Positions 4,375-62,240 of a stretch of 64,000 nt of DNA are shown here, in pieces. How positions within the stretch are numbered: the first letter of the stretch is position 1; each line of letters opens with the position of its first letter. The DNA is from Auanema rhodensis (Eukaryota > Animalia > Nematoda). Where the stretch lies: positions 12,710,001 to 12,774,000 of the forward strand of contig OZ059898.1 in the NCBI GenBank assembly GCA_964057225.1, in the 5' to 3' direction. A model generated the notes under the pieces. That model worked only from the letters and a program-made list of their open reading frames with translations, did no database searches and had not been told where the DNA came from. The translations under genes were made by a program, and so were the position numbers.

Positions 4375-7300
4375 ATACATCTAATCAATTCCTCTAAAAT
4401 ACTATTTTATTGAGAAAAAAGTGAACAAATTGAAACGATAAGGAAGACAAATTATGAAAAATGAATTACATGCTAGTAAGCAGTCAATTTAATTTTTAAA
4501 GATAAATATGATTTATTAAAAAAAAAAAAGAAAACAGTTTCACGTCACGTATATTTTGCATAATAAATATTCTAATAAGAAAGTTTTCTTTTAAAGTTTT
4601 GATTGAATCAAACCAAACATATCAGAGATACAACACTGACGCACAGCATCTGATATTTGAAGATTGCCTTCATAGATATTATATATGAAATGAATGAGCT
4701 GTAAGAAAATGAACTGAAAAACTTTGAAATGTTTAAAAGTTTTTTTAGTAATTTATTGGTTTTTCGAGATGATATAGATGAGATGATGATATACTGATAG
4801 TCTGACATTCAATTAGTATTTAGATATTTGGTAATACTATGAACGAAAAATTTAAAAAAAAAACACGAAGAAACGAAGAAAAATCTGTATGAAGCCGAAG
4901 AGTTTGAAATCAAAAGATGTGAGGAAAATGTAAAATAAGAGAGGACAAACAAGTTTTCTTTCGGAACGTACAGAAGGCATAATCGTCATGTAATGCTATT
5001 GATATTGAATCTTTTCACATCACATGCAAGTAAAGTTTTGAACATCATCCTCAAATCTGACCACTGTAGCAATGGAAATGAACGATTTATAGAAAAAAAA
5101 ACAAGTACAAGATATGTATTAGATGATAAATAAAATTACGAGCATTTCAATTGTTGAAATGAAATCTTAGAAATCAATATTTTGCCATGTTTGGCTAGTT
5201 TTGAAGATGATCAATGTGATTTAGGAGATCGAGAAAATGACCGATAAAGGGGCAGAGGAACACGTCGATGAAGATGAAGAGTTGATGAAGAAAATAAGAA
5301 AGAGAGAGAGATATATAGAGAGAGGGGGGGGGTGAAAAGAACGAGGGAGATGTGGGTGAATGGGAAACACATGAAGAAAGTAAGTTGCAAAAGGATGATA
5401 TCAATATGTCACGCGAGAAATTGAGAAAATCCCTCGGAAGCAAAGGGATGTGTGCTAAGCGGACCTATCAACACCACCTATTAAAGGAAACCAACATTCT
5501 CACACACACACACGTTTCAGAAACGATAAGAAAACCTGATGACTACTAGTTCTCCATGTTATACTTAAAGGAATTAATGATATTGGTCTTGAAAAGTACA
5601 GTTATACATCATTTTCTTTCTATATATAGCACATAAATATCAAAGTAAATGGTCAATGTTGAAATAAAAGTTCAAAAAGAAACGATGAGATTGAACTATA
5701 GTAGAAGATGAGGTGAGCCAGTTCCACACATATTGAGTTGAATTATGAAAGAAATGGAGATTTCAATTTGAACTAGTGGCTTTCAAATGAGTTTGTTTTG
5801 ATGATCAAATGTGTGCTAATTATGTATAAATCTTTATAAGGATGAACTCGATTTATACAGGTTTCATCATCATGTTCAATCCCTCTCATTCTAACCTTTT
5901 CCCTTACTCTCCGAACCTCTATTTAATCTTTACATTCTGTAAAATACATTCAAGCTTATATCTATGCTTTGAATAGAAAAAACATCATTTCATAAAGGTT
6001 AAGACAGTAAGATGAAGGATTCTGGAAAGATAAAAAGAAATATTTGATTAGGAAAGTTGTGTACAGAGTTGTACTGTGCTTCGGAAATCTGCTCCAACTA
6101 GCACAAAACTAACTAATGTACCGGAAAAAAGAAGTTTTATGTTTGTTTGTCAATCTGTTTTCCAGTTTCTTACCTTTGACTTCATTTCTTAGGAAATTGA
6201 GAAACAAAATTTCTTTTTTTTTATGAAACAAAAACAATAATTGGACAAAGAAAGTGACATAACAATCACGAATAATAATTAACATTCTTCTTCAGCTTTT
6301 GCAAGAAATAATTTGTGAAAGTAAAGTTGAATATAATTCTCAAATATTATTAATTTAGTCTTAATTCATGTAAAAGATAATGAAAAATATAAAATTTTTT
6401 CGAAAATTGCTTGTTTAAACTGAATTTGGATAAACAAATAATAGAATGTATTATACAGTAGAATCATTCTATTTGCTAATCAGTTTAACATGATCTATTT
6501 TCTAATTTTCTTGTAGAATTGAAGAAAAAAGTAAAAAAGTAATACAGAAAATTATATTTGTTAATGCGCTAATCTGATTAAATGAAAGAACTTTTAGTAA
6601 ACAAAGTTCAATAAAATCTCAAAAACTATCTATTTCAACTGGTCAGATTGATTGACGTCAGCAACATCATCATTACTCCATACCTCATTGGATGATAATA
6701 TTGTCCTGAATAGACAAACAGAACAATAAATCGAAAATCACAAAATAATATGTTTAACCTGAGATTATGGGTCCTTAAACGACAAATGACGGAATCAGTG
6801 TCATGATCATGATCGGAGGTTCACGAGGTTAAAACATGTAACAACAAAGCTTGAAGGTGAAAGTAGGAAAATGTACATTTTTTTATAAAATTGAAAAAGA
6901 AAAAAAAAAGATAAAATATTGAAAATTTAATTTTAATTTTCAAATATTTTAAATTCAAAACATATTATGATAAGCTGAATATGAAAAGAATTTTTAGATA
7001 ATAAATGAATGAAATGATATACATAAATGAAGAAAGAACGATATAAAATGTTAATGTGTTATCATATTTTTAAATCAAATAATTTAAAAATTTCATAAAG
7101 CATATAAATAAAATTAAAAGGTTAAAATGAGTAATCAAACAAGTAAAATAGAGATAGAACTATTAGTTGCTTATCGAATGAATATTGTTGATTTAAGTTG
7201 TTAAAGACAATATAACAAAGATCATATTACGATCAAAATGTTTGAAAAACTTATACGTACTATATGATAACTAAATGTGTTTTAATATTATGATTAACTA

Positions 7301-7744
7301 TAGAAAAATGACTGAAAATGGCGTCAAATCTCGATTATGTCATATAACTGGAAATGAGAATATTTTGACCGAAAAAAATTGACAAGTTAGATACATTTTT
7401 ATGAATAAAAACATGTCATTTCATAACAATTATATGTTAACTATGCTATAATTTGAGAAAAAAAAAGTTCAAATATTGTCATATCCTATATTCCATGGTA
7501 AATCATGAAATCATGTATTATTCTGTTTTCATGAATATGACATAGATTTCCAATATATGAAAAGATGAGAATAAGCGGATGAGATGAAATTGTACAAGCA
7601 AGATATACGTATTGGGTAAACTTTGACGGTAAATCTATCCGGTTGCCTATATGCAGTGCAGTGTTAATAGTTCGTCATTTACAATAATAGTTAGACTTTG
7701 TATAAATACTAGTACAGGCCAACAGATAAATTGGTAAAGAACAA

Positions 7745-7747
<3 letters not shown>

Positions 7748-7832
<85 letters not shown>
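7748..7832. repeat. (GA)n microsatellite, ~42 units
   Basis: Perfect GA run. It produces the spurious SLSLSL ORFs at 7647-7905. Confidence 0.95.
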
Positions 7833-7834
<2 letters not shown>

Positions 7835-10800
7835 TTTCCAAAGTTATAGTTGGGTGAAGGGTGGGGTAAGTGTAACCGTATATGAAACTTACATGTTAAG
7901 GACAATTTAACAAAAAAAAACCAGATGTAGATATCTTTCTCATTTTAATGTGCTCTTATTCGTATTATTTTCCTTAAAATTCAATATGAAAAATTGGAAA
8001 TGTAAATTGAACACAGCAAGAGAATTGATTATAAGAGTTTAATATCGAAAAATTAAACATTCAATGTGAGATTTTCTAATTATTTCTTTGTATTGTAAAA
8101 ATTTGAACTGACTTGCTGACTCAAATATACATGTCATGACTCCTTTTTGTTATATTTTCTTTTGAAAGCTTCTGTTTGAATGAATGACTTTTCGAGAAAA
8201 ATATGAAAACTTCTGTTGTTGACTGACTTTTCCTTATTTTTTTGTTCAAAATCTGAGTTTTAACAGGAAGAAATTTGAAAACATGTGTGGAATCAAAGAA
8301 ACTTTTCTAGCTCATGAACAACTGTTTACATGCTTGTTGCAAACCATTCAAAGTTGGAAGTTTATAAGTCATGAAATAAGCAAAATACAATTCAATATCG
8401 ATTATATTTCCAGACAGATATCGTTTTAATTCCACTAATTGGTCATAATTCTTTTTGAAATTGAGAGATATCATAGTTGAGATATGGATTTTGAATATAT
8501 ACATGAAATGATGTAGTTTAACCTTTAGACATTACTCTTTAAACAATGATAAATCATATATTAAATCAAAATCTCTGTTCAGCTTACTATGAATTAAAAG
8601 GAAAAGCCTATGCGTCTACTAAGATTTGAACCATTGTTGTTTTATTTGTAATTAAACTACTTAGCACTGCGCTGTCCATGCAACAATCATGATATTCTCG
8701 TTAATGGAGTAGTACACCCAAAAGCCTCAACTTTATTTCTTTAAGTTGCCATAACCTTCTTTATTCTGAACCAAAATTTAATTTTTCAACATAATTTTAA
8801 TCAGAAAAGCCTACACAACATGATGGTGGTATCAGTATCAAATCAGCTAGAAAACAAATATTGTTTTTCTGCCTATAAATTCAATAATTTTCGCAGAAAG
8901 TTACATTTCAACTGATTTTGAAATATTAAAAGTATGAAATTTGAAATAATTGTAGTATATTGTTACATTCATCGAATAATAATTGAAATAATACAGTTCA
9001 ACTGAAGTTTTGATCATTTTGTGAATAAAGTATATTGACTACGTTATTATTTGAAATAATTTGTTGTTTTAATATACGTTTAACCTATAATATACTATTA
9101 GAAAAAATAATTAAATTGTACAAAATACTTCTTGATTATTAAAAAAATAAATTATAGCATTGGAACTACTATTGAGAGCACCTAATATTCCAATAATCAT
9201 TAACCAATATGTTGATAAATTAAAAAATATAATTATATGTGGCCATATACGGCATAATGTCCATGTAAATGTATAACATATGGAAACCATGCAAAACTGT
9301 AGAGCATGCCTAATTGAATTTCATTATATGCTATGCGAAAAAAACAAAAAGTAAATTCAAAAAATAAACTATGTTGTTTAGTTGAAACATACATATATTC
9401 TTTTCGTTTTCGTTGACTTTTAACAGCTTGACTAAGTCCAGATGAAGTTTTCTTTACATATATAAATATCTTAATTATTATAATTATATATTAAATATAT
9501 ATTTATATTTTATATAATTTACTATTATATAACAAACTATACACGTAATTGAAGCTGTTGAATCAAGTGGTATATCAATATAGATATTTGTATAGTTAAT
9601 CATATTATCTCTCTCATTGTATGAATATGAGTACATAATTGGATCAATTGAGAATCTAATTAATTTACATTAAATGAACTTCCAACTTTAAGTTGAAACT
9701 TACCCACAACACGAAATTATAAATTGATCAAGGAGAGACATTATTAAAGCTATAATCACTTGTAAAATAACTATAATACGAACAACTTTAAAGGTAAAAA
9801 TATTATGAAAAGGAAAACACACAACGATTAATCTAAAATTTTATTCTTTCAAATAGAAAGTTTCATTCAAGTTTATCAAGTTTATACCTGTTAATTGCCA
9901 TAAATAGTTGACAAATTGACATATTATTCCAACATATCAAGTAGATAAATGATATCAATCTAACATTCCTACCATATCTTCCTCCTTCAAACAACCAACT
10001 CTAAAACGTTAACTATGTCATATAGTTAATATGAAATCTAATCTATTACATGTAATGAATAAGCCGGAATCGTGTACCCAAAATTGATAATCAGAATAAT
10101 TATATCAGCTATAAGATTTGAGAAAGCAATTGTATAAATAGGAGAAGATTTAGTTCTTAAATTTTTCTTTTTTTTTTAGAAAATAATTATATTTAAACTT
10201 ACTTAAAACATAATTTAGTAACTGAATATAATACTATTAATGATAATAATAAACCAAAACAATTAATAAATCCAAATATTGATAGTAAAACTGTTTTTAA
10301 CATCAACATTAAGCTGAATAAAACTATTTCAAAAGGAAGAAAATAATTTTAGCAATGTATATAGTTATAGGGTACATTTCTACAGATTGGAATTATACAA
10401 TTCATGTTACTATATCAAGTTACAGCTTTGAAAATTGTATTTAGTTATAAGAATAATGAAAAATTCTGATCATTGTAAATTTGAAAATATGAAATACACT
10501 ACGTGACCTACGTCAATGAGATTAGAATATCATTTTGAATTGACAACAACGGTTGAGCGGTTGTATACTGTTAGCTATACTAACTATATTCTTAATTATT
10601 TTTAATAATTTAGGTATCAAAGCATCAATCAACATGAATTAATTGGAAAATAGTAATATTGAGAACAAAAAATCAAGGACGACTTAACCTGATTAGTGGA
10701 GGATAAACACTCAAGTCTGTTTAGAAAATGTTTTAAAGTTATTAACGGTTGCTGCAGTGGGTAGAATATCTGAGTTTTTAAAATATCTTGATGATGTTAG

Positions 10801-19353: not shown

Positions 19354-22300
19354 AGGGGAAGAGGGAAACAACCAAATTAATAGAAACCATAGTAAACAAT
19401 TGGGTAAATAAATTTTCAAAAAAGATTGAAAAATAATTTGGTTTGAAACTGCAAGTTTATTGCAAAAGGTAACATCATGTTGCGGCAATTGCACATTCAA
19501 CCTTGTGAATTAGGTAGAAATAACAAGCTTTCCAAGTTTTTCATAAAACTCGGTTTTGATTGAAAAGCTTTTCATCTGTGTAATTACCAGTGGTACACAG
19601 TTTTTCAGCTTACATGTTCTCTCTTGAGTATATACTGCCACAAGTGATATTTAGTTGAAAAAATCTTAATTTGCCTTAGCTATTTCGATTAGTTGAAAGA
19701 TCAAACATATAGAAATGTTATTAGAAGAATGGAGTGACAAGTTGAAAATCTAATAACTTGAAAAACTTCAAATAGAAACTTCAGTCCAAAAAAGGAGTGA
19801 ATTGAAAGATTCATGCTCATTCGAAAAACTTTGCCAACTTTCAAAAGTCGTTGAGGAAAATAACGACAAAATGAAAAGAAACGGTGAAACAATTACCGGA
19901 AAAAATAAATGAAGAGGAAAATATCTTTAAATTGAACAAGAAAAACAAAAAAATTATATAAAAAGCAAGAATATTGAGATAGAATGTGTCTTGAAGCGAG
20001 AATTCTGCTATGCTTTTAACATCAGCTTTCTTGGGGTTATGTCTGTTTTGGTCTCAAGTTAATCTTCATTTTCGCATGATATCATAACAATCTTCTGAAA
20101 TTGCTTTCATGAAAAAAAAAAGATTTTTTCAAAATCTTCAACTTCGTTACATCATTCAAACAACGATCTTAACATAAGCGATTGTTTCTCTCTCTCTCTC
20201 CCTCTCTCTCTCTCTCTTACTCATACTCTATCTCCCTTTCCCTCCCTCTTACTCTGCTTCTTTTAGTGTCTTGAAGATTCTTCTTTTGTTTGGTGTCGTC
20301 ATAAGAGAAAAATGAACCATTTTCCTGAGATATCGTGTAAGTGTGTGTGTTAGAATGCTGTTCAACAATACGAACCCATTCATCCACTCATAATACACTT
20401 GGAAGTTTTCGAAATTTGTTGAAAGTTGTGATAACAGTCGAAAGATATTGGTTGGATTACTTTATTTGACAAGTAGCAAGAGTGAAGATGAGAAAGCTGA
20501 AAGCTTTATTTCACATTTTCTAGAAAAAGCCTACAAGATGCATCTGTTTGTAACACCTATTCGTTATATCTGAATGTTTTTTTTAAGTCTAGGAATGACA
20601 TTTAGATAAATTATAACAAGGAAATAGATTTATGATTGTAAATTAGATAGAAAACTAGCAATTTTCTTTTAAATAATGGTAAAACTCACTATGTTTGGCA
20701 GGGCTTTGATGCTTGAACGGTGTATTTAAAAAATTAATCTCAAAACGAAATTTGGGATAAAAAGGAAAAAGAGCTGAATGGATGAGGAATTACGTCAATA
20801 TGAGAGAGGAAAAAGGCAGCCGCGTGAAAAGAGTATGCAAAAAGAAGGAGAGAAACTGAATCTGCTTCTAGCGAAAGACGTGAAGAGGAAGAGCCGTAAG
20901 CTGAAAAACGGCTTTCAGCATGTGTATACATGTATGTCTGTGTCATTTCGCCTCTGCTCTCTATCATTTCATATAGTCTTTGGCAGTTTTTTCTTGCTCT
21001 CTCATTCTCCAGCTTTCTCGTCGTTTTCCATTTTCGACGTCTGTGCCATCCTTTCATACCGCAATCTTTTACATCACAAGTCTATCTATGCAATTGATGT
21101 ATATTTCGACGTACAGGCTCAACAGAAAAACAATATTCATCGAATTTTAATAATCCTCGTAATGGCTGGGGAGAGCTTTTTCTGTCTCTTTTATTTTTTT
21201 TATTTTGTTGGGTGTGCTCACTCTAAGCATGTTATCTCATGAATGCAGACATTCACTCTCTCACTACCTTTTCAAGCTCAATCTCTCCTTCTTCTTGTAT
21301 CCATCACTTCTTTCTGTCTCTGTCTCTATCTCTGTCTCTCTCTCTCTCTCTGTCTCTATATCTCTCTCTCACTCTCTCTCTCTCTCTGGATATCAATCAA
21401 TCTAGATTTTTTTTAGAAATCGTTTCAAATATATCCATTACCAATAGATAGTAAAGAAAAAAACGAAACAATGGGATACAGGGAAACTACAGTAGACGGC
21501 AAGACACATGCATGTGATTTCGATGGGCAAAGTAGGCACGGACCAAATAACTGTTCTGACGGTGTGTTAAGTAAGTGAGATTTAACAATATGGCTTGTTT
21601 ACCATGACCGATGTCCTTAAAGTGTATCTTGCTTCATATTTTTATAAACTTTCTATATCGTTGAGGGAAAACATATCTAGAGTTTAAAAAAATACATGAA
21701 AAAGTGCTTGGAGTGGATGGCATAGAGCTGGATCTAGTAGGTTAAAACAAGCAAAATGCCCATGGGATAGACGAAAAGAATAATTTGTTTCCTTTTTAAG
21801 CAGAGTAATAAATTGCGCAAAAGAAGCGACATCACAGAAAATATGAAAGATTTTTCATGTTTGGAAAAAATGAGAAAGAAAAACGGAAACTCATACGTCG
21901 TCTGGGTTATATGTCCAACAACTATTCGAGTACGAAGCTCTTCGCCTCATAGATAGAAGAGCTGATAGACTTTTTAAGATCAGATAATGTAATGAGAAAG
22001 GCAAACGATTTTTTAAAATTTAAGAGTCGAGGGCTAAATTAGAATACATGAGAGACGATGAATGGGATGGCTTTAATAGATTCGAAATGGGGTAATGAGA
22101 TGAGGAAACGAAAGAGTAAAGAAATGACAATAAGGAGAAAGAGAGATCAACTGAAACAGGAGGAAGTTGAGCACAAAAGAGAAGGTTTGACATCAGCTTT
22201 TGCGGAGACTAAGGAGTTAGCTGTTAGGAGTAGAAGCAGCTCTTTGACAAGCGATTCAGCAGAAAAATGAACAGAGCCAGGAGCGAATAGGAAGAATAAA

Positions 22301-52500: not shown

Positions 52501-54249
52501 CGGTGGTTGTGGTGTTAGTGGTAGTGTTGGTGGTGGTAGTCGTGTGGTCCTTGTGTCTCCCTCGGGGGGCAATACACAGACGTGGAAAGAAGGAAAGAGA
52601 GAAAGAGATAGATGGAGGAAAAGAGAGAGAATAAGACAGTGTGAGCCAATGATGGAGAAAGAGAGAGCGACCAGGGAGACCAGTCTAGCCTCCACGTAAC
52701 TTCACGTTGGAGCCGGACAAACAAAAAACATTGATTTTCCATCTGAACCTCTAGAAATAGCAGCAGGACAGCCTCTACTAGAGAGTATACGAAAAGAGGA
52801 AGAAATAGAAATCATATGCCCACCACGGATTGAGATTGGATGGAAAGATGAATCATACAAGGAACGGATTTGGGAGAGTAAGAACCCACGTGCATGTAGT
52901 AGGTGAGAGAAAATTAATAAATAAATCCGGAATTGTATGAAAGAGTGAACAACATTTATAGGAAGAGAATGAGATCAGATGAAAGTCCATGGAATAATAT
53001 GTAATCGGAAGAACTTTGATGAACATGAAGCCCAAGAAAGCTGAGAAAAGGAAGAAGAGATAATATGAAAAGAAAAGGAAGGAAGGAAGGAAGGGAAGAG
53101 CACAGAAAAAGGATGCACTGGTCACGTAAAGTAGATGCAGCTGTCTGAATCTATGTTGACGTCAGTGCAACTAGCAACATTTCCATAGAAATGATTCAAT
53201 ACAATGTGTAGAATAAGAAATGAACACCAACTAGAAGGTGAGAGTAAAGGAAAGGGAAGATGAAGCAAAAAAAAAGTCAAAAAAGACGTCGAGAGAACAG
53301 AGAATGAAAAACAACCGTTTGATGCGCTTCGGTTTCGAAAAATGAATAAGTGTTGTTCACGTGGATGACGTGTTTTCTCACGTGCATTAACAGAATAAAT
53401 TCCATGAATATTCAGAATCATTATGAATACAGTTAGAGTAATGTATTTGATCAGAATAGAATACATAGAATAGCTGACCAGTTAAAGACATTGCATGGCC
53501 AGTCGACAAGACAGCGGAAGAGACCACAACTCACTTGTCTGTTCGCGTGTGGCGCACACGCAGTGAGATCAGCATAGACTTGAACCAAGCTTTCCGGGAT
53601 CGACCAAACAAGCTCGAGAGTCACTTTGTCTTCTTGAACGGGAAAGGGATCGACGAAGATGGCATAAAAGGAGGATAAGGAGAAGAGATTGAAGTCCAAG
53701 GGGTCAGTCACAAATCTGGAAGAGACGGAGTTGTTCAAAGAACTATTGTGAGTTTTGAATCACTGGAATACACCCAATACCCAAGCCTCTGACAGTGAAA
53801 AAGAATTAGTGGTGATGATCGTAATAGACTGCGTGTTCTTCGATCCGACTTGTCGCCGGGATCGACCTAATGAGCGAGGAATCCTTATACGGTCAACAGA
53901 ATGTACGAGATCCTATTCTTCACGACAGCCGCACTCATCACCATCTTCCCAATCAACATACCCTAGTCGGCCTAATGGCTGGCAAAGATGACGTTCTCTG
54001 TCATTCAAAGATGAAAATTTCGAAGACTGTTTCCAAGACAACTAGTCTACTATTTTGTCTACGTGAACGACACGGAAATGACCGGGCAGGTCTTGCTTAA
54101 GAAAGAGAATTGAAAGAAGGCGAGAATAAGAACAAGGCAAAAAGAAGAGAGGACCAGAGAACAGGGGGGTTAGAAGCGGAAGACGTAAAGAGGTGAGCGA
54201 CAACGATTCTGACAGCGAAGGTGAAAGCGAAATCGCCGCTAGTCTAGGG

Positions 54250-54257
54250 TTATATAA
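54250..54257. promoter_or_regulatory. TATA-box-like TATATAA (readable on both strands) in a GC-richer island
   Basis: GGGTTATATAAGGCG with GC-rich flanks. No associated gene was identified. Confidence 0.3.
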
Positions 54258-54970
54258 GGCGTTTTCAGGTACTGACGCTGATGATTGGAAGATGTCACAT
54301 CAAGCGAACGGACAAGTTCAGAAGAGAAAAGGAAGAACAGATGAAGAAACGGAGCCGACGTGTGATGGCCATACGTAAGACAAGACAAAAATGACAATGA
54401 TCACAATGATATGGTAAAGGTGTTGAAGAAGATGCTGACAACATTTGAAACCACACAATTCTTCACGTCGACATCAATAATGCTTAAAACATGCCATCCT
54501 AATCATGTTCCAACGACGAGCGTAACTAACTGCTAACATTTAAGTATTTCTAAGGGGAACATCTTTCTCTCTCTTTCTCTCTCTCTTTCTTTTTTTATTT
54601 CTTATGAATACTGATAAGAAACAACTTTGACAGGAAAACATGTATGAAATCCATTTATCACAGGAAAACGAAACTCATGCAAGAACTTCAACACAAGATT
54701 GAGTTAATTGCAAATAACTATAAAAATTTATATCAAGAGTATCGAGAATTGTTATAACCTGAACATCAACTAGAAAATTGAAATAAAACTAAGTTTTATA
54801 TGCTAAGTTGTGTGAAATTGAGATAAAAATATAATAAATGATGGGTTTTCAAACTCATAGATGCCTGATATTAACTAATTTACTCGAAATATATCTAATT
54901 TTGGTATATTCGACATGAATATACACTGTATCAGAGATCATCTCAACTAAACACTGGAAAACTGGTGCTA

Positions 54971-55248
54971 GTAGTATGTGAAAAGTTGTCGCTGGACGGT
55001 CATTTTGCCCATTCTCTATTTTTTGCACTTTTTAGCTATTTTAATGCACAAAAATATCAAAAATCTGTCTTAACTTATCGAAAATTGGTCATTTCTGAAA
55101 AAATGGTAAATTTGGACTGTCTAGTTCTTTGACCATTTTGCCCAGTACCCCCTTTTCCCAAATCCAAGCTTTTTCACATTTTCGAATAAATTAATCCTAA
55201 TAAATAAGCAAGTTAAATAAAAATCTGAAACCACTAACAAATCTAGAT
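54971..55248 (+). repeat. Left terminal inverted repeat
   Basis: Reverse complement of 56231-56502. Confidence 0.92.
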
Positions 55249-55357
55249 GTTACAGATTGACCACTCTCTCTTTCTCTTTTAGTTCTTTCCTTTGGTGTGA
55301 CGTACAAAGGTCATCAGCGTTCACTTTTCTCGAGCACACACATTTGCTCCAGTTAAA

Positions 55358-56230
55358 CTAGCCGCACGCGACGCAACACGCGAACGCGTTGTGCGTCGTT
55401 TTCCATCCGTGATCATTTCCCTTATATTTGCTAATAAATCATAAATCATCATTTCACTTATATTCGCTATTAAATCTCTCTGTTTAAAGAAAAATGTAAA
55501 AAGGTAACGTGGATATGTTGGAGAAGACTCTACTCACGGCTTCCGAAAAATGAGTACAATTACGTCATACGCTATCTCAGAAGTGAATGACATAATTGTG
55601 CTCAAGATTATTGCCGGGGAATTCCCGTTCTATTCGAAAGGATTGGATTCTCTGTATTGAGGCCAGCACTATTTGCAGTTGGGCATCAGCCCGAACAGAA
55701 TGCCAACCTGGAAAGAGGGAGTCATATCTGACAGATGCGGTATGTCTAAATTCTTAACTTTATTGTTAATTATTTGATATGATTGGGTACTATATTGGAA
55801 CGTCGGGCGATTCGGGCAGTGGAATTTTTAATTCGTCCGGATATTTTCTCGGAGTGTCGGTCAGAAAGAAGAATATGTTCGTCATCAACGATTCTTCCAA
55901 CATGCCACTAGCAGAAGTGGCGGACCACCGCCCTGATAGTATAATAATCACCTCCGATATGATTATGGCAATTGCTGGAATTGGCGGACCAGGGTAAGCG
56001 AGCAGCTTCCCTCATAAATTCTACAGTTTTGCGATTTTGTTTCAATTGAATTTTTCTGTATTCGGTAAACAACAAAAAAATGATATGGATTCACTGCTTG
56101 ACGAATATTGAACAGGTGGAAGATATCGTTGATTACGATTCAAATATCTTTTATTGTATCAGGCAAAATGTCACTCATGAAGATTCCACGGAAATCTTTG
56201 ATTCTTAGCTTTTCTACAAAATTCATAGGA
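55358..56230 (-). mobile_element. Putative non-autonomous Helitron nested in the TIR element (873 bp)
   Basis: On the minus strand, the 5' end A|TCCTATG sits exactly at the inner edge of the right TIR. The 3' end has a GC-rich hairpin (CGACGCACAACGCGTTCGCGTGTTGCGTCG, 55369-55398), a 7-nt spacer, then CTAG|T. An internal 29-bp duplication lies at 55412-55440 / 55448-55476. The 3' end is well supported; the 5' end is inferred. Confidence 0.62.
55565..55997 (+). pseudogene. Decayed trypsin/chymotrypsin-like serine protease fragment (transposon cargo)
   Basis: SYAISEVNDIIVLKIIAGEFPFYSKGLDSLY*GQHYLQLGISPNRMPTWKEGVISDRC (in-frame TGA at 55658), then a GTATGT intron donor at 55740 with no intact AG acceptor, then GYYIGTSGDSGSGIFNSSGYFLGVSVRKK. 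DIIVLK resembles the catalytic-Asp strand and GDSGSG the catalytic-Ser motif. No clear catalytic-His exon. Confidence 0.7.
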
Positions 56231-56502
56231 TCTAGATTAGTGGTTTCAGATTTTTATTTAACTTGCTTATTTATTAGGATTAATTTATTCGAAAATGTGA
56301 AAAAGCTTGGATTTGGGAAAAGGGGCTACTGGGCAAAATGGTCTAAGAACTAGACAGTCCAAATTTACCATTTTTTCAGAAATGACCAATTTTCGATAAG
56401 TTAAGACAGATTTTTGATGTTTTTGTGCATTAAAATAGCTAAAAAGTGCAAAAATAGAGAATGGGCAAAATGACCGTCCAGCGACAACTGTTCACATACT
56501 AC
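56231..56502 (-). repeat. Right terminal inverted repeat
   Basis: Reverse complement of 54971-55248. Confidence 0.92.
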
Positions 56503-59500
56503 TATGATGTTGATTCTGATAATAATCATAAGAAGGTGGAGAGAAACGGAAAACAGTCATATTCGTTGTGGAACATGTCGTGCCGAGAATGTGACATCGT
56601 TCACGCAATAGTTGAGAGAAAGTTGTTCAAATATCGCTGAAGAAACAATAGAAAAGAATAAAAAAATTAGAAAATCTGCAAAGTACACTGACACGTGAAC
56701 TCATGCTGGAAAGGTCACGTGAAAACGTGGACATTGTTTCAGGACATTGTATATAGAGGGAAGAAGGGGAAGTGTGTTCAGTCGGCTGTCAATTGGCTGG
56801 AGGCGGTCCGAAACTTGGTGGTCGTCAATGAACCGTCAAAGGCATTGGGATGGTGTTGGTAGTGGGAGTAGAGTACAAGGAGACATCAGAGGTTGCAGAT
56901 GGATGGACAAGGCTCGATGGACAAAGAGAACGATTGAGATGTTAGAGTTCTGGAATACATGATGGAACAAATAAAATGCAGAGAGATATATAAAGAGAGA
57001 AAGAGGGATATAACATACTTTTTACATGAAAAGAGAGCTCGAAAGAGAGAGAGGGAAAATGAGAGGGAATGATTGAGAATTAAGAGAAAAGAGAGCAAAA
57101 TGATGGTAGTGCCGCCAGTCAGACATCTCTCTTCACGTGAAATGTTATTTCGTTGTTTAGTGTCTGGTTTCTCTACACGTGAACCACTATCTCTAACACG
57201 TATATGGCGTAGTAGCGATCGTTGTGTGCTGGGTGGTTCGGCGGAAGGGGGCTGACTGGTGTAGACGTCGACGACTAGCCATATGGATGGGATGAATGTG
57301 GAGGAAGAGTAAAAAGAATGAAATCGTCTATAGAGAGACGTGGAGAGACAGAGAAAAAGAAAAAATAAGAGAGGGACATAAGTATAAAGAAGATGGTAAT
57401 AGGGCACAAGGCTCAATGACGATCTGGATGACAAGCAGTGTCGGGCTTTTCCAGTCAAAAGCGGAAACGTTCACACATGAAAAAAAGCATAAAAGAGAAC
57501 TCACGTGGACAAAAGCTCCAAGAAATGTCTTATGAACATGACCGACATGAAGAAAGAGAATTGAAAAAGATATAGATAATATCAGTAGAACATGTAATAT
57601 ATTAAACATGCATAGGGGTTCAATTTAAAGAAAAAGCTCGACTAAAATGAGAAAAAATAGAAAATTTGCATAAAGAAAGAGTTGGAGCATCGAGAAAAAC
57701 AGAATAAGATCAGAAATAATCTAGTCGAAGTAGTTTCATAGCGAAACTGACATGAGAAGAGATAACCGTGTGTAAGCGTTTGTAATCTCAAAAATAGAGT
57801 TACGAGCTTCACGTGAAAAACGCCAATCCTCACGTACGCAAAAAAGAAATATAAAGATGTACATGATTATAATGATTTTGAGTACACGAGTAAGCTGAAA
57901 TATATAAAAACTCTGTATATTATAGATAATATAGGTGATAATTTGAAAAACAAGAGGAAAAACGAACGAGAGAGAGAGGTGGTGAGAACTAAAAATGAAC
58001 ACGAGGATATGAGATACAAGAAAGAGAATTAGAGAAAAAGAAAATGATGAGAGGTTAGGAAAGTAATGATTCAGTGCAACTATGAGCGGGATAGACCAAC
58101 GACGAACAACGAAATCGTAAACGTGTTAAATACCAGACCGACAACGAATAAGGAAAACGACGTCAACGCACCTAATACTAGGACCAGCAGCGGTTTCAAA
58201 TCTATGTGAAACATTGGCTGATATGAGTTTGTAATCTAGGTGTAAATTTTATGAATGGTTACCGAGTGTTTGCTAATAACTTGACAGTTTAGAAGAAAGA
58301 AAAAGATAAAACCAGGTAAATGAGTCAAAGTCAGTAAAAGCAAAGAAATGCTTAAAACAGATTTGAGACGATGATTAGAGTTAGTGAGATGATATGGAAC
58401 ATGATGAAAGAGATGGACTACCTTGAAAGTTTAACTTTCAAACTTTTGAATTAAACGCCATGTGTCAAAGTAAAACAAAGCTAATAGTCATCTGTAACGA
58501 CGAAGTAATAATAGACTAGTCGTCAGCTAATAATTCCCCATGTCTGTATGTATCTCATATGTGTGAAAGTATAATTGAGAACATCCTAGATAGAGAACTA
58601 ATATATACATACATGCATACATAGATACATACATACCAGCCCTCCGGCAATATCTTTTTTCTTTCACTATGCGTTGTTGCAAGGGCCGTCTGTGATATGT
58701 CCTTAGGTTGTGGCGTGAGATAGCTGGCCAAACATCGCGCAGCAGCGCCTAACGACTTCACGTGGATCAGCTGCCCAGTCGCCCCTGCAGTCGTCAGTCG
58801 GTAGATTCTCCCTCGTTTACATTCTCTCTTATCTCTTCAACTCACTCCGTCTCTTTCTCGTACCCAGCCCGTTCTATCGCTTTCTTTCTTTACATGCAAA
58901 CATCAAAATGTAGCTCTTGATGTCATTGCATTGGCGTATTTCCTAGGTTGAAATCAGAATCAAGCCTTTCCACCACACCCATCATATATATTCCTTGAAA
59001 TTTGGGAACCAGGGGTGACACAATTGCAAGAAGCTTATGAATTTTAGCACATGCACCAAGAACATTCACAAAAAAGACGAATTTAGTTTGATATAGTTGG
59101 CTGAAATCAAGCTAATTAGCTTCCCAAAGCTCTGACTCTTAGCTATCAATTGAGAGAACGAAGAAGATTACCATCACATGCACATATATAGCATCATCGT
59201 GTTAACAACATGTTGAAATGAGCCATTTCATTAAGGCTGTTGCCACTACTGGTAGCGTTAGTTGAATCAAGAGGGAGGAAGAGAAGACACATTAAGTCAA
59301 ACGACAATGATGTCTTGTAGTACACAATATGATTGAGATAGTGATAATCATAATAGAATATGTGAGAGAATATGAATGAAGATTTTTGGAAAATCAATCT
59401 AAATATGAGTAGAAACGTGAGAAATACAGATAGCAAGATATAAAGATTGATAGATTGAGAGAGAGAGAGCGAAAAAGAGAAAGAGACGAGAGGGCAGAAG

Positions 59501-61880
59501 TTAAACACACGTCGAACTTACCAGTATTGAATCTGAACGTCAAAAATTCAAGATCAAAAAGGTAAAATAAGCCTAACATATACATTGATTTGATGAAAAA
59601 AAATTTCAAAAATCGAGATGATTTAAAAATAAATTAATCATTTACGATTGGATGATGAATGCATGTTGAGAGTCACGGATCGCTCGGTTATTCGGAAAAC
59701 AAGAAGGTTGAGATTTCAGGTGAAGGAAGGGTTTAAGTGGGAATTAAGAAGAAGTCTTTGCTAAACTAAGGATGCTGAGAGTAGAAGACTACGTTGCTGG
59801 AGACAAAGTGAGCGCCTGCCTGCTCGATTATCACGTGCGTGAACAGTTGAAGGACATTGCTCACGACATGATGAGGGGGCACACGCGCAGCTTTGAAGAC
59901 GAATAGCTGATTGCAAAGTGTGAAAAAGCAGAGAGGAAAAGGAATTAAATCATAATGAAAATCGATTTAACTGGAGGCTTTTAAACTTTATCCAAGGTTA
60001 ATCACACATAATCAGAAGAAAATTTGTACAAGAATTTGCAAACAAATAATTCGATTGGAATTCCAAACATATGGGAAATTTGAAATTATAAATGGGGATA
60101 ACTCACTTTTCTCCAGAAGAATAAGAGAGCGTTGACCAACTTATTGATGTTGCGGGAGGTTTTCAGGTTAAGAATCTAGCACTTTGAGAAAAATTGATTC
60201 AAATAAGGAACTGTTGTTCATTTACAATGAAACATGATGATGTGATAAACGCATCTGATTGAGCTGAATCTACTGACTAGAAAGATCTGAGAGGGGAAAT
60301 AAGCTTCGTGATCATAGAAAGGACAAAGATTCATGCATCAGGAGTCAACGAGCAACGGATGATATACTGCTTGCCTTTAAAATCGTCCTTGTCGTCGACG
60401 CCGTCGTTGTCATCATCACAGCATCATCGTCTTTCTCTTGATGTGTTGCTGTAACTGCCAACTATCTTGGTGGCTGTTGCTGCTCGCACGCACTCTCAGA
60501 ATCATCATCGTTGACGTTCTCAGTGAGGAAGCGCCAAAAATTTTTATTGGGCACTGGGCGAACCAAATTCAATTACCCGTTCAGAAGGCTCTTTTTGTTC
60601 TCGTCGATGTTGCATTCGCACCCGGAACAATTACTTGAAACGTTGTTCCTTTTTCTTTTTTTCTCATTTCTCCCGTCATTGTCATCATCGACTTGTTGGT
60701 CTAATAGATAGTTAAATATATTGCAAAGAGAAGATTTAACTATATGCGCATCGTTAGTGGTATAAATGCTAGTAATGACAATGATTCAGGAACTTATTTC
60801 ACAAAAAACAGAGAAAGAGAGAGAGAAAGAGTATAATCACAGCAGAAGAGTTGCCTAGAACATGGATATACGTGCAATTCAGTCATATTTCATTTTGGAA
60901 CCTTTCTTTTCAATGTATGTGTGTTCAGACTCAGTTCACCCCATCGAACTAATATTTCTGGTAATGAAGCAGGCAAGTCAGTTAGCCTTCTAGCTAGCCA
61001 GAAAACGAGATAGCTGGTTAGTCACATTGTGGATAGATAGGGCTTAAGTATGGAAGGCATAGCGTACGAAGCAGGTGTCAGATTAGCATTTTCATTTAAA
61101 ATTCAAATGTAAAAGAAGGTATCAAATGGCCACTTTATTCAACAATTGACAAACTACTGTCTGTAGAGTTTTGAGTTAAAGAACATATAATGATGATCAT
61201 CATCATCATCATCATAGTTTATAAATTTCATTTCAATGATAAAGATAACGATTTCAATTCAAGCCGTTCATCATCATTATGACAACTTCATTGTCTGTAT
61301 TGAAGTCTTCCATGTGCTCTTCTTATCCTTTCGATTCAATTTCAAACGATAAAAGACGGGCCAAGAGATTAGAGGCTATATGACCTATCGTGATCATCTC
61401 ATGAAATTCTTGATTACAAGCAGATATTTCAAGATATCTTATCATATTCACTTGCGTATGTGTGTGACTTTATAGCTCATAGTGATCTTTCATCGTTATA
61501 ATCATCACTTTGTCACATAATTCATTCAACTTTTCTTCCTATCTCCCTCATTTTCTCACTATTTTCCCTCTTTCTTTATCTTTACTCTATTTTTGAAAAA
61601 TAACATTTACCTCAACATGAACTTTATCAAGCTGACAGTAATAGTTTCCATTTTTCAATTTGAAATATTGAAAATGAAAAATATTTATATGTCAATGAGA
61701 ATAGAAAAAGACAAAACGATCAGAATGACATTCATTCTTTGCAAACTCTATATCATCGATGGATGTGTGAGATGTGAAAAAGGCAATTTGAATGACTTGA
61801 AATGTATGGAAAATCTCATAACTTTTTCAAAGCAAAGCTTTTCAAAATCGTTCTGCCGAAATAGATATGTGTTTCATCTT

Positions 61881-61941
<61 letters not shown>
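61881..61941. repeat. (CT)n microsatellite
   Basis: About 30 CT units with one interruption. It produces the ERERER/SLSLSL ORFs. Confidence 0.9.
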
Positions 61942-61944
<3 letters not shown>

Positions 61945-62240
61945 ACTAAAAAAAGCTTTACCAAACATTCTATGTTGGGACCAACGTATATCGTATTCGA
62001 AAAAGTAAAGAACAAAAAACGAAAGAAAACTAGAGATTGATAGTGATATAGAGAGAACGAGAGTATATGTATGAAAAAAATAGAGATATAGAGAGAGTGA
62101 GAAATCGAGAGAGAGAGAAAGAGAGAGAGAGATAGAGAAAGAGTGAGATAGAGAGAGGGAATGGGAAGGGAGGGCAACCGAATAGCACATCGTTGAAACA
62201 AAAAAAAATAAAACAGTAATCATTTCATAGCAGGGATGTT

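Follow-up and report, generated by a model that had tools for sequence, protein, structure and literature searches.

How did a serine protease gene come to lie between two long inverted repeats in the nematode Auanema rhodensis, and which kind of mobile element carried it? The locus occupies positions 54969-56504 of a 64-kb stretch of DNA (GCA_964057225.1, contig OZ059898.1), which we call the window and whose positions are used as coordinates throughout. An initial annotation had proposed three nested layers: an outer transposon with terminal inverted repeats (TIRs) flanked by TA, a Helitron in the middle and a protease gene fragment inside it. The outer and the inner layer held up in our analysis and the Helitron layer did not. 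The locus is probably one unit, a non-autonomous, TA-flanked Tc1/mariner-like element of the inverted repeat/direct repeat (IR/DR) type that captured a wosp-like protease gene with both its flanks and is now decayed. The wosp genes ("WASP" in the preprint) encode worm HtrA-like serine proteases that are Maverick/Polinton cargo in nematodes (10.1101/2022.07.12.499685). Here the protease gene and its own 5' and 3' flanks would sit in place of the transposase gene.

Two near-identical arms with paired internal repeats

TIRs of about 275 bp with few differences and TA on both sides had been noticed from the bare letters, and a repeat search and an end-to-end MAFFT alignment confirmed them. The repeat search matched the inverted arms over 218 nucleotides (nt) at 99% and over 55 nt at 98% identity. 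Aligned end to end, the arms differ by 4 substitutions and by two indels, of 1 bp and of 4 bp, and the left arm ends at 55248 rather than at 55249. The outermost TA is not separable from the last two repeat bases because TA is its own reverse complement.

Each arm contains the 11-mer CATTTTGCCCA twice, with the same spacing of 133 bp, and these four copies are the only ones in the 64 kb. The chance expectation is 0.06 copies, and 0 of 100 shuffled sequences gave four. An outer and an inner direct repeat in each arm is the IR/DR layout of Tc3, Sleeping Beauty and Minos-type Tc1/mariner elements. Searches with blastn and tblastn found no second copy of the TIR, of the roughly 110-bp core proposed initially or of the interior elsewhere in the window, and no transposase open reading frame (ORF) was found inside the element. 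The element would have moved, or may still move, by means of a transposase acting in trans, which would bind the four CATTTTGCCCA sites and insert the element at TA.

The cargo is a broken wosp-like protease gene

Translation of the plus strand of the interior yielded an Asp motif (NDIIVLKI) and a Ser motif (GDSGSG), and the remnant matched members of the protease family in tblastn with E values from 1e-18 to 2e-46, which bears out the protease gene fragment of the initial annotation. The reading frame is interrupted by a stop at codon 2 (55497-55499) and by an in-frame TGA at 55658-55660. Between 55548 and 55569 about 200 bp are missing, comprising the His-box region and the first intron; GDSG is preceded by a gap of 4 codons, the small final exon is lost, and one intron is retained (55739-55784). 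Family members carry H40, the Asp motif and GDSGS, whereas the window copy has the Asp and Ser motifs without the His-box region. With its early stop, its internal stop and the loss of the His-box region the cargo is, to judge from its reading frame, a dead gene.

The family identity of the pseudogene was established through its relatives, because the four ORF pieces of the window copy matched no Pfam family. An ESM Atlas search with a 72-residue piece gave trypsin-like leads and nothing more, and phmmer with the same piece returned 35 relatives from 1.8 billion representatives. Long multi-stretch phmmer matches appear spurious; the one that was checked, P0005, is a fungal "pseudo vic" protein. 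The best relative, P0001 of Caenorhabditis auriculariae, is 84% identical and scores 32.1 bits for Pfam Trypsin_2 against a cut-off of 27.6 bits. Full-length relatives of about 200-216 residues occur in C. japonica, C. bovis (three adjacent genes), C. nigoni, C. sp. 36 and C. auriculariae. The relatives found consist of the protease domain only and carry no N-terminal ubiquitin-like domain.

For the fold we used a family member, P0002, and not the broken window copy. An AlphaFold (AF2) model of P0002 built from nine family sequences (alignment A5) reached a predicted local distance difference test score (pLDDT) of 71 and a predicted template modelling score (pTM) of 0.74. Its best matches in the PDB are the protease domains of DegS/HtrA proteins (E 5e-8, TM about 0.6), and the family model has an HtrA/Deg-like trypsin fold without a PDZ domain. 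The label "wosp-like" refers to this structural kinship; the identifiers in Data S1 of the wosp study (CAUJ_/CBOVI.) differ from the GenBank accessions of the proteins used here. As a circumstantial point, the three adjacent C. bovis genes appear both in the wosp list and among our relatives. A sequence profile of alignment A5 has alphavirus capsid (chymotrypsin-like) proteases as its nearest structures (E 7e-5), followed by staphylococcal exfoliative toxins. These profile matches say merely "chymotrypsin fold", and profile and predicted fold rank different branches of one fold.

Fragments of the protease are also present in Auanema and Aphelenchoides. In Auanema sp. JU1783 (L002:5995-6434) the same gene fragment, including the intron region, has a nucleotide identity of 75-81% to the window copy and of 77% to the C. 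auriculariae copy. The 7.3 kb of L002 contain no TIR, no CATTTTGCCCA motif and no 5'-flank motif; similarly, the C. auriculariae locus L005 holds the gene or fragments of it, with neither TIR nor motif.

Protease gene, flanks and repeat form one homologous block

We compared the window with the DNA around the C. auriculariae proteins P0001, P0020 and P0044 (loci L001, L003 and L004). Window positions 55385-56206 align with all three loci at 81-98% identity, and in all three the same TIR follows the protease gene at equal distance. The right TIR of the window is homologous along its full length to the single TIR of these loci. Against L001 the identity is 85-89% in exons, 87% in the intron, 88% in the 5' flank, 90% in the 3' flank and 81% in the TIR, where the latter value holds for its outer 134 bp. 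The stretch 56207-56371, which spans the proposed Helitron boundary at 56230, is collinear with C. auriculariae (local score 80.5 against 37.4 ± 6.1 for shuffled sequences, z=7.1). At the same junction GATC, which supplies the A|TC of the minus strand, is conserved in L001.

Since divergence is uniform over exon, intron, flanks and TIR, all these parts are of similar age. On the evidence of these alignments, interior and TIR have been joined for at least as long as it took the copies of the window and of C. auriculariae to diverge by 10-19%, and their association did not arise recently at this locus. L001 and L003/L004 are homologous up to the very terminus of the TIR and no further, which marks it as a real element end. 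The TIR of L001 also ends in ...CATACTAC-TA and L003 has TC at that place. In L001 two CATTTTGCCCA sites (7085-7095 and 7218-7228) keep the 133-bp spacing while their surroundings have diverged.

When the C. auriculariae TIR itself was used as query, no left TIR was found within 5.6-9 kb upstream in these loci. L003 and L004, with a single TIR each, are part of an inverted segmental duplication of 7.9 kb. The gene would have been captured once, before the window and the C. auriculariae copies diverged, and template switching during gap repair is one possible route.

Homology crosses both proposed Helitron ends

Helitrons are marked by a 5' TC, by a 3' hairpin followed by CTRR, and by insertion between A and T. 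On the minus strand, from 56230 to 55358, the interior begins with A|TC (TCCTATG) and ends with hairpin-CGTGCGG-CTAG|T, so that the TC, the GC-rich hairpin, the CTAG and the A|T flanks reported initially are literally there. The hairpin has a 7+4-bp stem of -12.1 kcal/mol and lies 7 nt ahead of CTAG. When the 45 nt of DNA upstream of every CTRR+T site in the window were folded, on both strands, it ranked first among 480 sites (the next reached -8.9 kcal/mol) and is non-trivial. Folding of 81 nt gave z=-1.0, a value that understated the hairpin; the site-by-site scan is the fairer one and favours the earlier observation.

At the 5' end of the proposed Helitron, TC and TIR overlap: the T is the final base at which the TIR arms match, and its position is fixed by the TIR end. 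The argument that removal of 55358-56230 restores ATCTAGA|T carries nearly no weight, since the right arm already reads ATCTAGAT through 56230, so that the argument turns on a single base (T).

At the 3' end, the 31 bases 55337-55367, of which 21 nt lie outside and 10 nt inside the proposed terminus, recur at 87% identity in L003 (3951-3981) and L004 (7375-7405). There they stand upstream of the protease segment in the same order, separated from it by a gap of about 115 bp and a nested 1.5-kb miniature inverted-repeat transposable element (MITE). Locus L006 has the motif too, as CAGTTGAACTAGACGCAC, and there it precedes the start codon of P0041 by about 255 bp. This paralogue is distant and intact; no TIR lies near it, the interior has no DNA match there, and the locus has the unbroken order motif, GCAGAGACGCAGAGGAA, CGCATTCTTCCATCAACTTTT, TGTAGTTC, TTTCCCATCCG, ATG. 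On the minus strand, conservation beyond CTAG/CGAG extends over 12 nt (TTYAACTGKRGC) in each of the three contexts and reaches 21 nt in two of them. Because the motif recurs upstream of paralogues, including the TIR-less P0041, CTAG is part of the protease family's own 5' flank and not a transposon terminus. The shared core reads CAGTTRAACT[A/C]G[A/C]CGCAC (window 55350-55367, L004:7384-7405, L006:5731-5748). In two genomes it precedes the start codons of diverged paralogues by roughly 140-270 bp, and it may serve the protease family as a promoter or regulatory element.

The compact hairpin, too, has a plausible secondary origin. C. auriculariae copies match the window from 55385, in the right hairpin arm, rightward (55385-55440 is 98% identical to L001 5927-5983), and the left arm and CTAG are absent there. 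In the relatives the complementary 7-mers CGACGCA and TGCGTCG are about 100-120 bp apart and form no compact hairpin. The window reads GAACGCGTTG|TGCGTCG, in which the left part matches the upstream flank and the right part the gene-proximal flank of C. auriculariae, with an overlap of CGCGTTG. CGACGCA may have been brought next to TGCGTCG, and the hairpin so created, when about 100-120 bp were deleted between two CGCGTTG repeats; the undeleted downstream half of the 5' flank is known from C. auriculariae alone.

A nested Helitron is unsupported because homology runs past both of its proposed ends, from 56230 into the TIR and from 55358 by 12-21 nt. Homology of this kind, which the initial annotation had itself named as telling against a Helitron inside a young MITE, was found at both the TC and the CTAG end.

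Read-derived contigs show an occupied site

Logan contigs of four public runs (X1, X8, X10 and X11) were examined over 54100-57400 at an identity of at least 88%. The element is present at its site, as shown by X1, whose contigs span the left (54606-55013) and the right outer end (56460-57400), and by X8, with a contig across the right end (56469-56693). Position 55357/55358 is crossed by contigs of all four runs. Neither an empty-site joint nor a 55357>56231 joint was reported in the four runs. An empty site in X10 and X11 (40-45% of sampled words) was considered and rejected in favour of thin, patchy coverage of about 3-8x; in both runs, contigs map within the element.

Depth over 55432-56208 is mostly at the level of the flanks (22-31 against 20-26 in X1, and likewise in X8) and rises in the last bin only. 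By depth, the interior has no free copies at an identity of at least 88%; the exceptions are traces left by diverged paralogues, namely an X10 contig of 56038-56167 with a diverged tail and, in X8 and X11, an inserted A after 55425 as in L001. TIR bins stand at about 2-3x, for which the two arms account together with a further copy of 89% identity and a contig that joins 55244 to 56371. The source of that contig may be a family member that has diverged or undergone internal deletion and is without core and interior.

The bin 55321-55431 reaches 4-5x. The raised depth over the spacer 55249-55336 comes mainly from the CT repeat and from short repeat matches, and this spacer has a weak, non-significant collinear similarity to the sequence upstream in L003. 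Other loci of the same species share 55337-55391, are preceded by CACTGTGACCGAGCACAAT and then continue as GGACTATGTAGAGTGGAAGG. Since GGACTATGTAGAGTGGAAGG is homologous to L003 3988-4017 and CACTGTGACCGAGCACAAT to L003 3763-3781, the loci with this continuation are, as their alignment reads, undeleted 5' flanks of paralogues. The MITE of about 660 bp with a 110-bp core that had been postulated did not show up on its own in the contigs of the four runs, and its part 55337-55357 is 5' flank of the protease. Nor do the reported joints and the listed pieces of these runs include the free interior copies or the empty TIR copies with a ATCTAGATTTAAC junction that the nested scheme predicted.

Alternative origins of the locus

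The most literal reading of the end signatures, in which a recent non-autonomous Helitron (minus strand, 56230 to 55358) brought the protease fragment in between A and T of a young MITE of about 660 bp, is extremely unlikely. All four signatures are there, the hairpin is the best of 480, and the other loci share the end zone 55358-55391 and diverge inward, as would a family common only at its 3' end. Set against this are the C. auriculariae homology that crosses the 5' end into the TIR, the 12-21 nt beyond CTAG that the other loci and L003/L004/L006 share on what would be the host side, the separated hairpin arms of the relatives, the mostly single-copy depth of the interior without a reported 55357>56231 joint, and a linkage of interior and TIR that is older than the divergence from C. 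auriculariae. An age problem does not arise if an old Helitron entered an ancestral TIR element, the composite was then propagated as a whole and its Helitron ends eroded in C. auriculariae. The order of core-like motif, interior and TIR, common to the window and L003/L004, and the GATC kept at the 5' junction of L001 agree with such a history; we nevertheless regard it as very improbable. The CTAG motif and its "flank" side also stand upstream of the intact P0041, which has no TIR, and neither a RepHel protein nor a family of ends gives a positive sign. The history is less parsimonious than simple capture, and the present data do not tell the two apart.

It is also improbable that there is no mobile unit here at all, that is, that the gene lay beside a solo TIR and a local inverted duplication of its 3' flank of about 277 bp made the second arm, with TA as a coincidence. 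Such an event would account for the single TIR in all three C. auriculariae copies, for the lack of a second two-ended copy among those seen, and for window arms that are 98% alike while matching the C. auriculariae TIR at 81%. Both arms, however, end at identical terminal nucleotides, as does L001 (L003 differs at the last base), and TA flanks both ends. A diverged, 89%-identical TIR copy and the 55244-56371 contig exist elsewhere in the same genome, and the IR/DR layout of the motif is typical of functional TIRs.

The single TA-flanked element with a captured gene, which we favour, has points against it as well. The TA at the two ends is a candidate target-site duplication. Because neither a transposase nor an autonomous partner was found, the Tc1/mariner assignment draws on the TA and the IR/DR layout only, and the TIR terminus, (TA)GTAGTATG, is unlike the CAGT-type end that we take to be usual for Tc1. 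The window is the only two-ended copy seen, because the three C. auriculariae copies carry one TIR each. The top-ranked Helitron-3'-like motif must count as coincidence if the hairpin arose by deletion. Finally, statements on copy number derive from short Logan contigs of at least 88% identity and from joints among those listed, which demonstrate presence and cannot prove absence.

Relation to known mobile proteases and transposons

The closest parallel is msft-1/tlpr-1 of C. briggsae, in which a wosp protease was captured by a Mutator-like element (MULE) with 870-bp TIRs (Widen et al., 10.1101/2022.07.12.499685). As there, a nematode HtrA-like protease lies between long, near-identical TIRs of a cut-and-paste transposon. 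Unlike that MULE, the present element has TIRs of 275-280 bp, TA flanks, an IR/DR layout, no transposase and no antidote gene. The wosp family comprises 235 curated members, in which the N-terminal ubiquitin-like domain is described as modular (10.1101/2022.07.12.499685). The protease here is without such a domain and, in contrast to msft-1/tlpr-1, a pseudogene, and therefore no toxin-antidote function is expected. With the Maverick-borne wosp genes it shares the DegS/HtrA kinship of the family model, a species range that includes C. auriculariae, C. bovis, C. japonica and C. nigoni, and an intron about as identical between genomes as the exons. It differs from them in its carrier, a small TIR element, and no Maverick gene adjoins the window copy.

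Tc3, Sleeping Beauty and Minos resemble the element in their TA flanks and in TIRs of a few hundred bp with an outer and an inner short repeat per arm. They differ from it in that no transposase remnant is present here, the TIR reaches about 100 bp inside the inner repeat, and the interior is a captured gene. To our knowledge, gene capture is less often reported for Tc1/mariner elements than for MULEs, CACTA elements and Helitrons. Gene-fragment Helitrons have in common with the locus the four literal end signatures, at 56230 and 55358, and the gene fragment between them. Unlike in such Helitrons, these ends bound the homology in none of the related copies, the interior is not multicopy and the relatives have no compact hairpin.

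The locus is a modest addition to a known story, in which nematode wosp-type proteases are repeatedly picked up by mobile elements (Mavericks, the C. briggsae MULE). Here the carrier would be a small TA-flanked IR/DR element to which the gene's promoter-side motif is attached, in at least two genomes. The occurrence of one and the same small Tc1/mariner-like TIR element with a wosp-like gene in two nematode species could mean that this cargo has also spread horizontally by means other than Mavericks, which we consider a doubtful though conceivable extension. It presupposes the usual distance between nematode species and is based on the uniform identity of 81-90% over exon, intron, flanks and TIR. 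If true, wosp spread would have a second, much simpler vehicle besides Mavericks. The locus also calls for caution, since TC, hairpin, CTAG and A|T signatures can arise in ordinary sequence, here probably by way of a small deletion in a CG-rich 5' flank, and Helitron-like signatures need checking against the limits of homology among copies.

Feature coordinates and additional observations

Table 1. Features of the proposed captured-gene element and its ends, in window positions.
Feature	Position	Strand	Remarks
Left TIR	54969-55248	+	280 bp; 98% identical to the reverse complement of 56230-56504 (MAFFT)
TA, left outer end	54969-54970		Candidate target-site duplication; pairs with 56503-56504
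Outer CATTTTGCCCA repeat, left TIR	55001-55011	+	Candidate transposase-binding site
Inner CATTTTGCCCA repeat, left TIR	55134-55144	+	133 bp from the outer repeat
Spacer with CT-rich tract (55262-55290)	55249-55336		Part of the proposed "MITE core"
5' flank of captured gene	55337-55493	+	Motif CACACATTTGCTCCAGTTAAACTAGCCGCAC at 55337-55367; CTAG at 55358-55361; palindrome at 55369-55398
Pseudogene, wosp-like (HtrA/DegS-like, Trypsin_2) serine protease	55494-55997	+	Translation and relatives
3' flank of captured gene	55998-56229	+	56001-56206 is 88-90% identical to L001 6773-6975
Right TIR	56230-56504	-	275 bp; CATTTTGCCCA repeats at 56330-56340 and 56462-56472
TA, right outer end	56503-56504		Candidate target-site duplication

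The duplicated segment of C. auriculariae (L003:176-7820 and L004:3546-11353) lies on a 64-kb contig, CAJGYM010000217.1. Its two copies are 94.5% identical and hold the gene, the TIR and the flanks. The TIR element of about 1.5 kb that is nested in the 5' flank of the C. auriculariae protease (L003:4056-5580, approximately L004:7479-9038) has the ends GGGATAAGTTTTTAGGGGCCCCTATAGGGG and CCCCTATAGGGCCCCCTAAAACTTATCCC. A remnant with CCCTATAGG-type repeats is located just upstream of the 5'-flank motif in L006 (5680-5725).

To the left of the element, window positions 53520-53640 are CG-rich (gttcgcgtgtggcgcacacgc ... gaccaaacaagctcgag) and appear to resemble the hairpin zone and the string GACCAAACTCGTCGAG from the loose ends of the other loci. 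The window is very densely set with (GA)n/(CT)n microsatellites and with long purine/pyrimidine tracts. Runs of at least 5 units of these microsatellites amount to 634 bases in the 64-kb window and to 0 in 67 kb of C. auriculariae loci, a contrast which suggests that the species of the window differs from C. auriculariae. Purine/pyrimidine tracts of at least 20 make up 18 bp per kb of the window, and examples of such microsatellites and tracts lie at 2076-2135, 7738-7842, 21309-21404 and 61877-61950.

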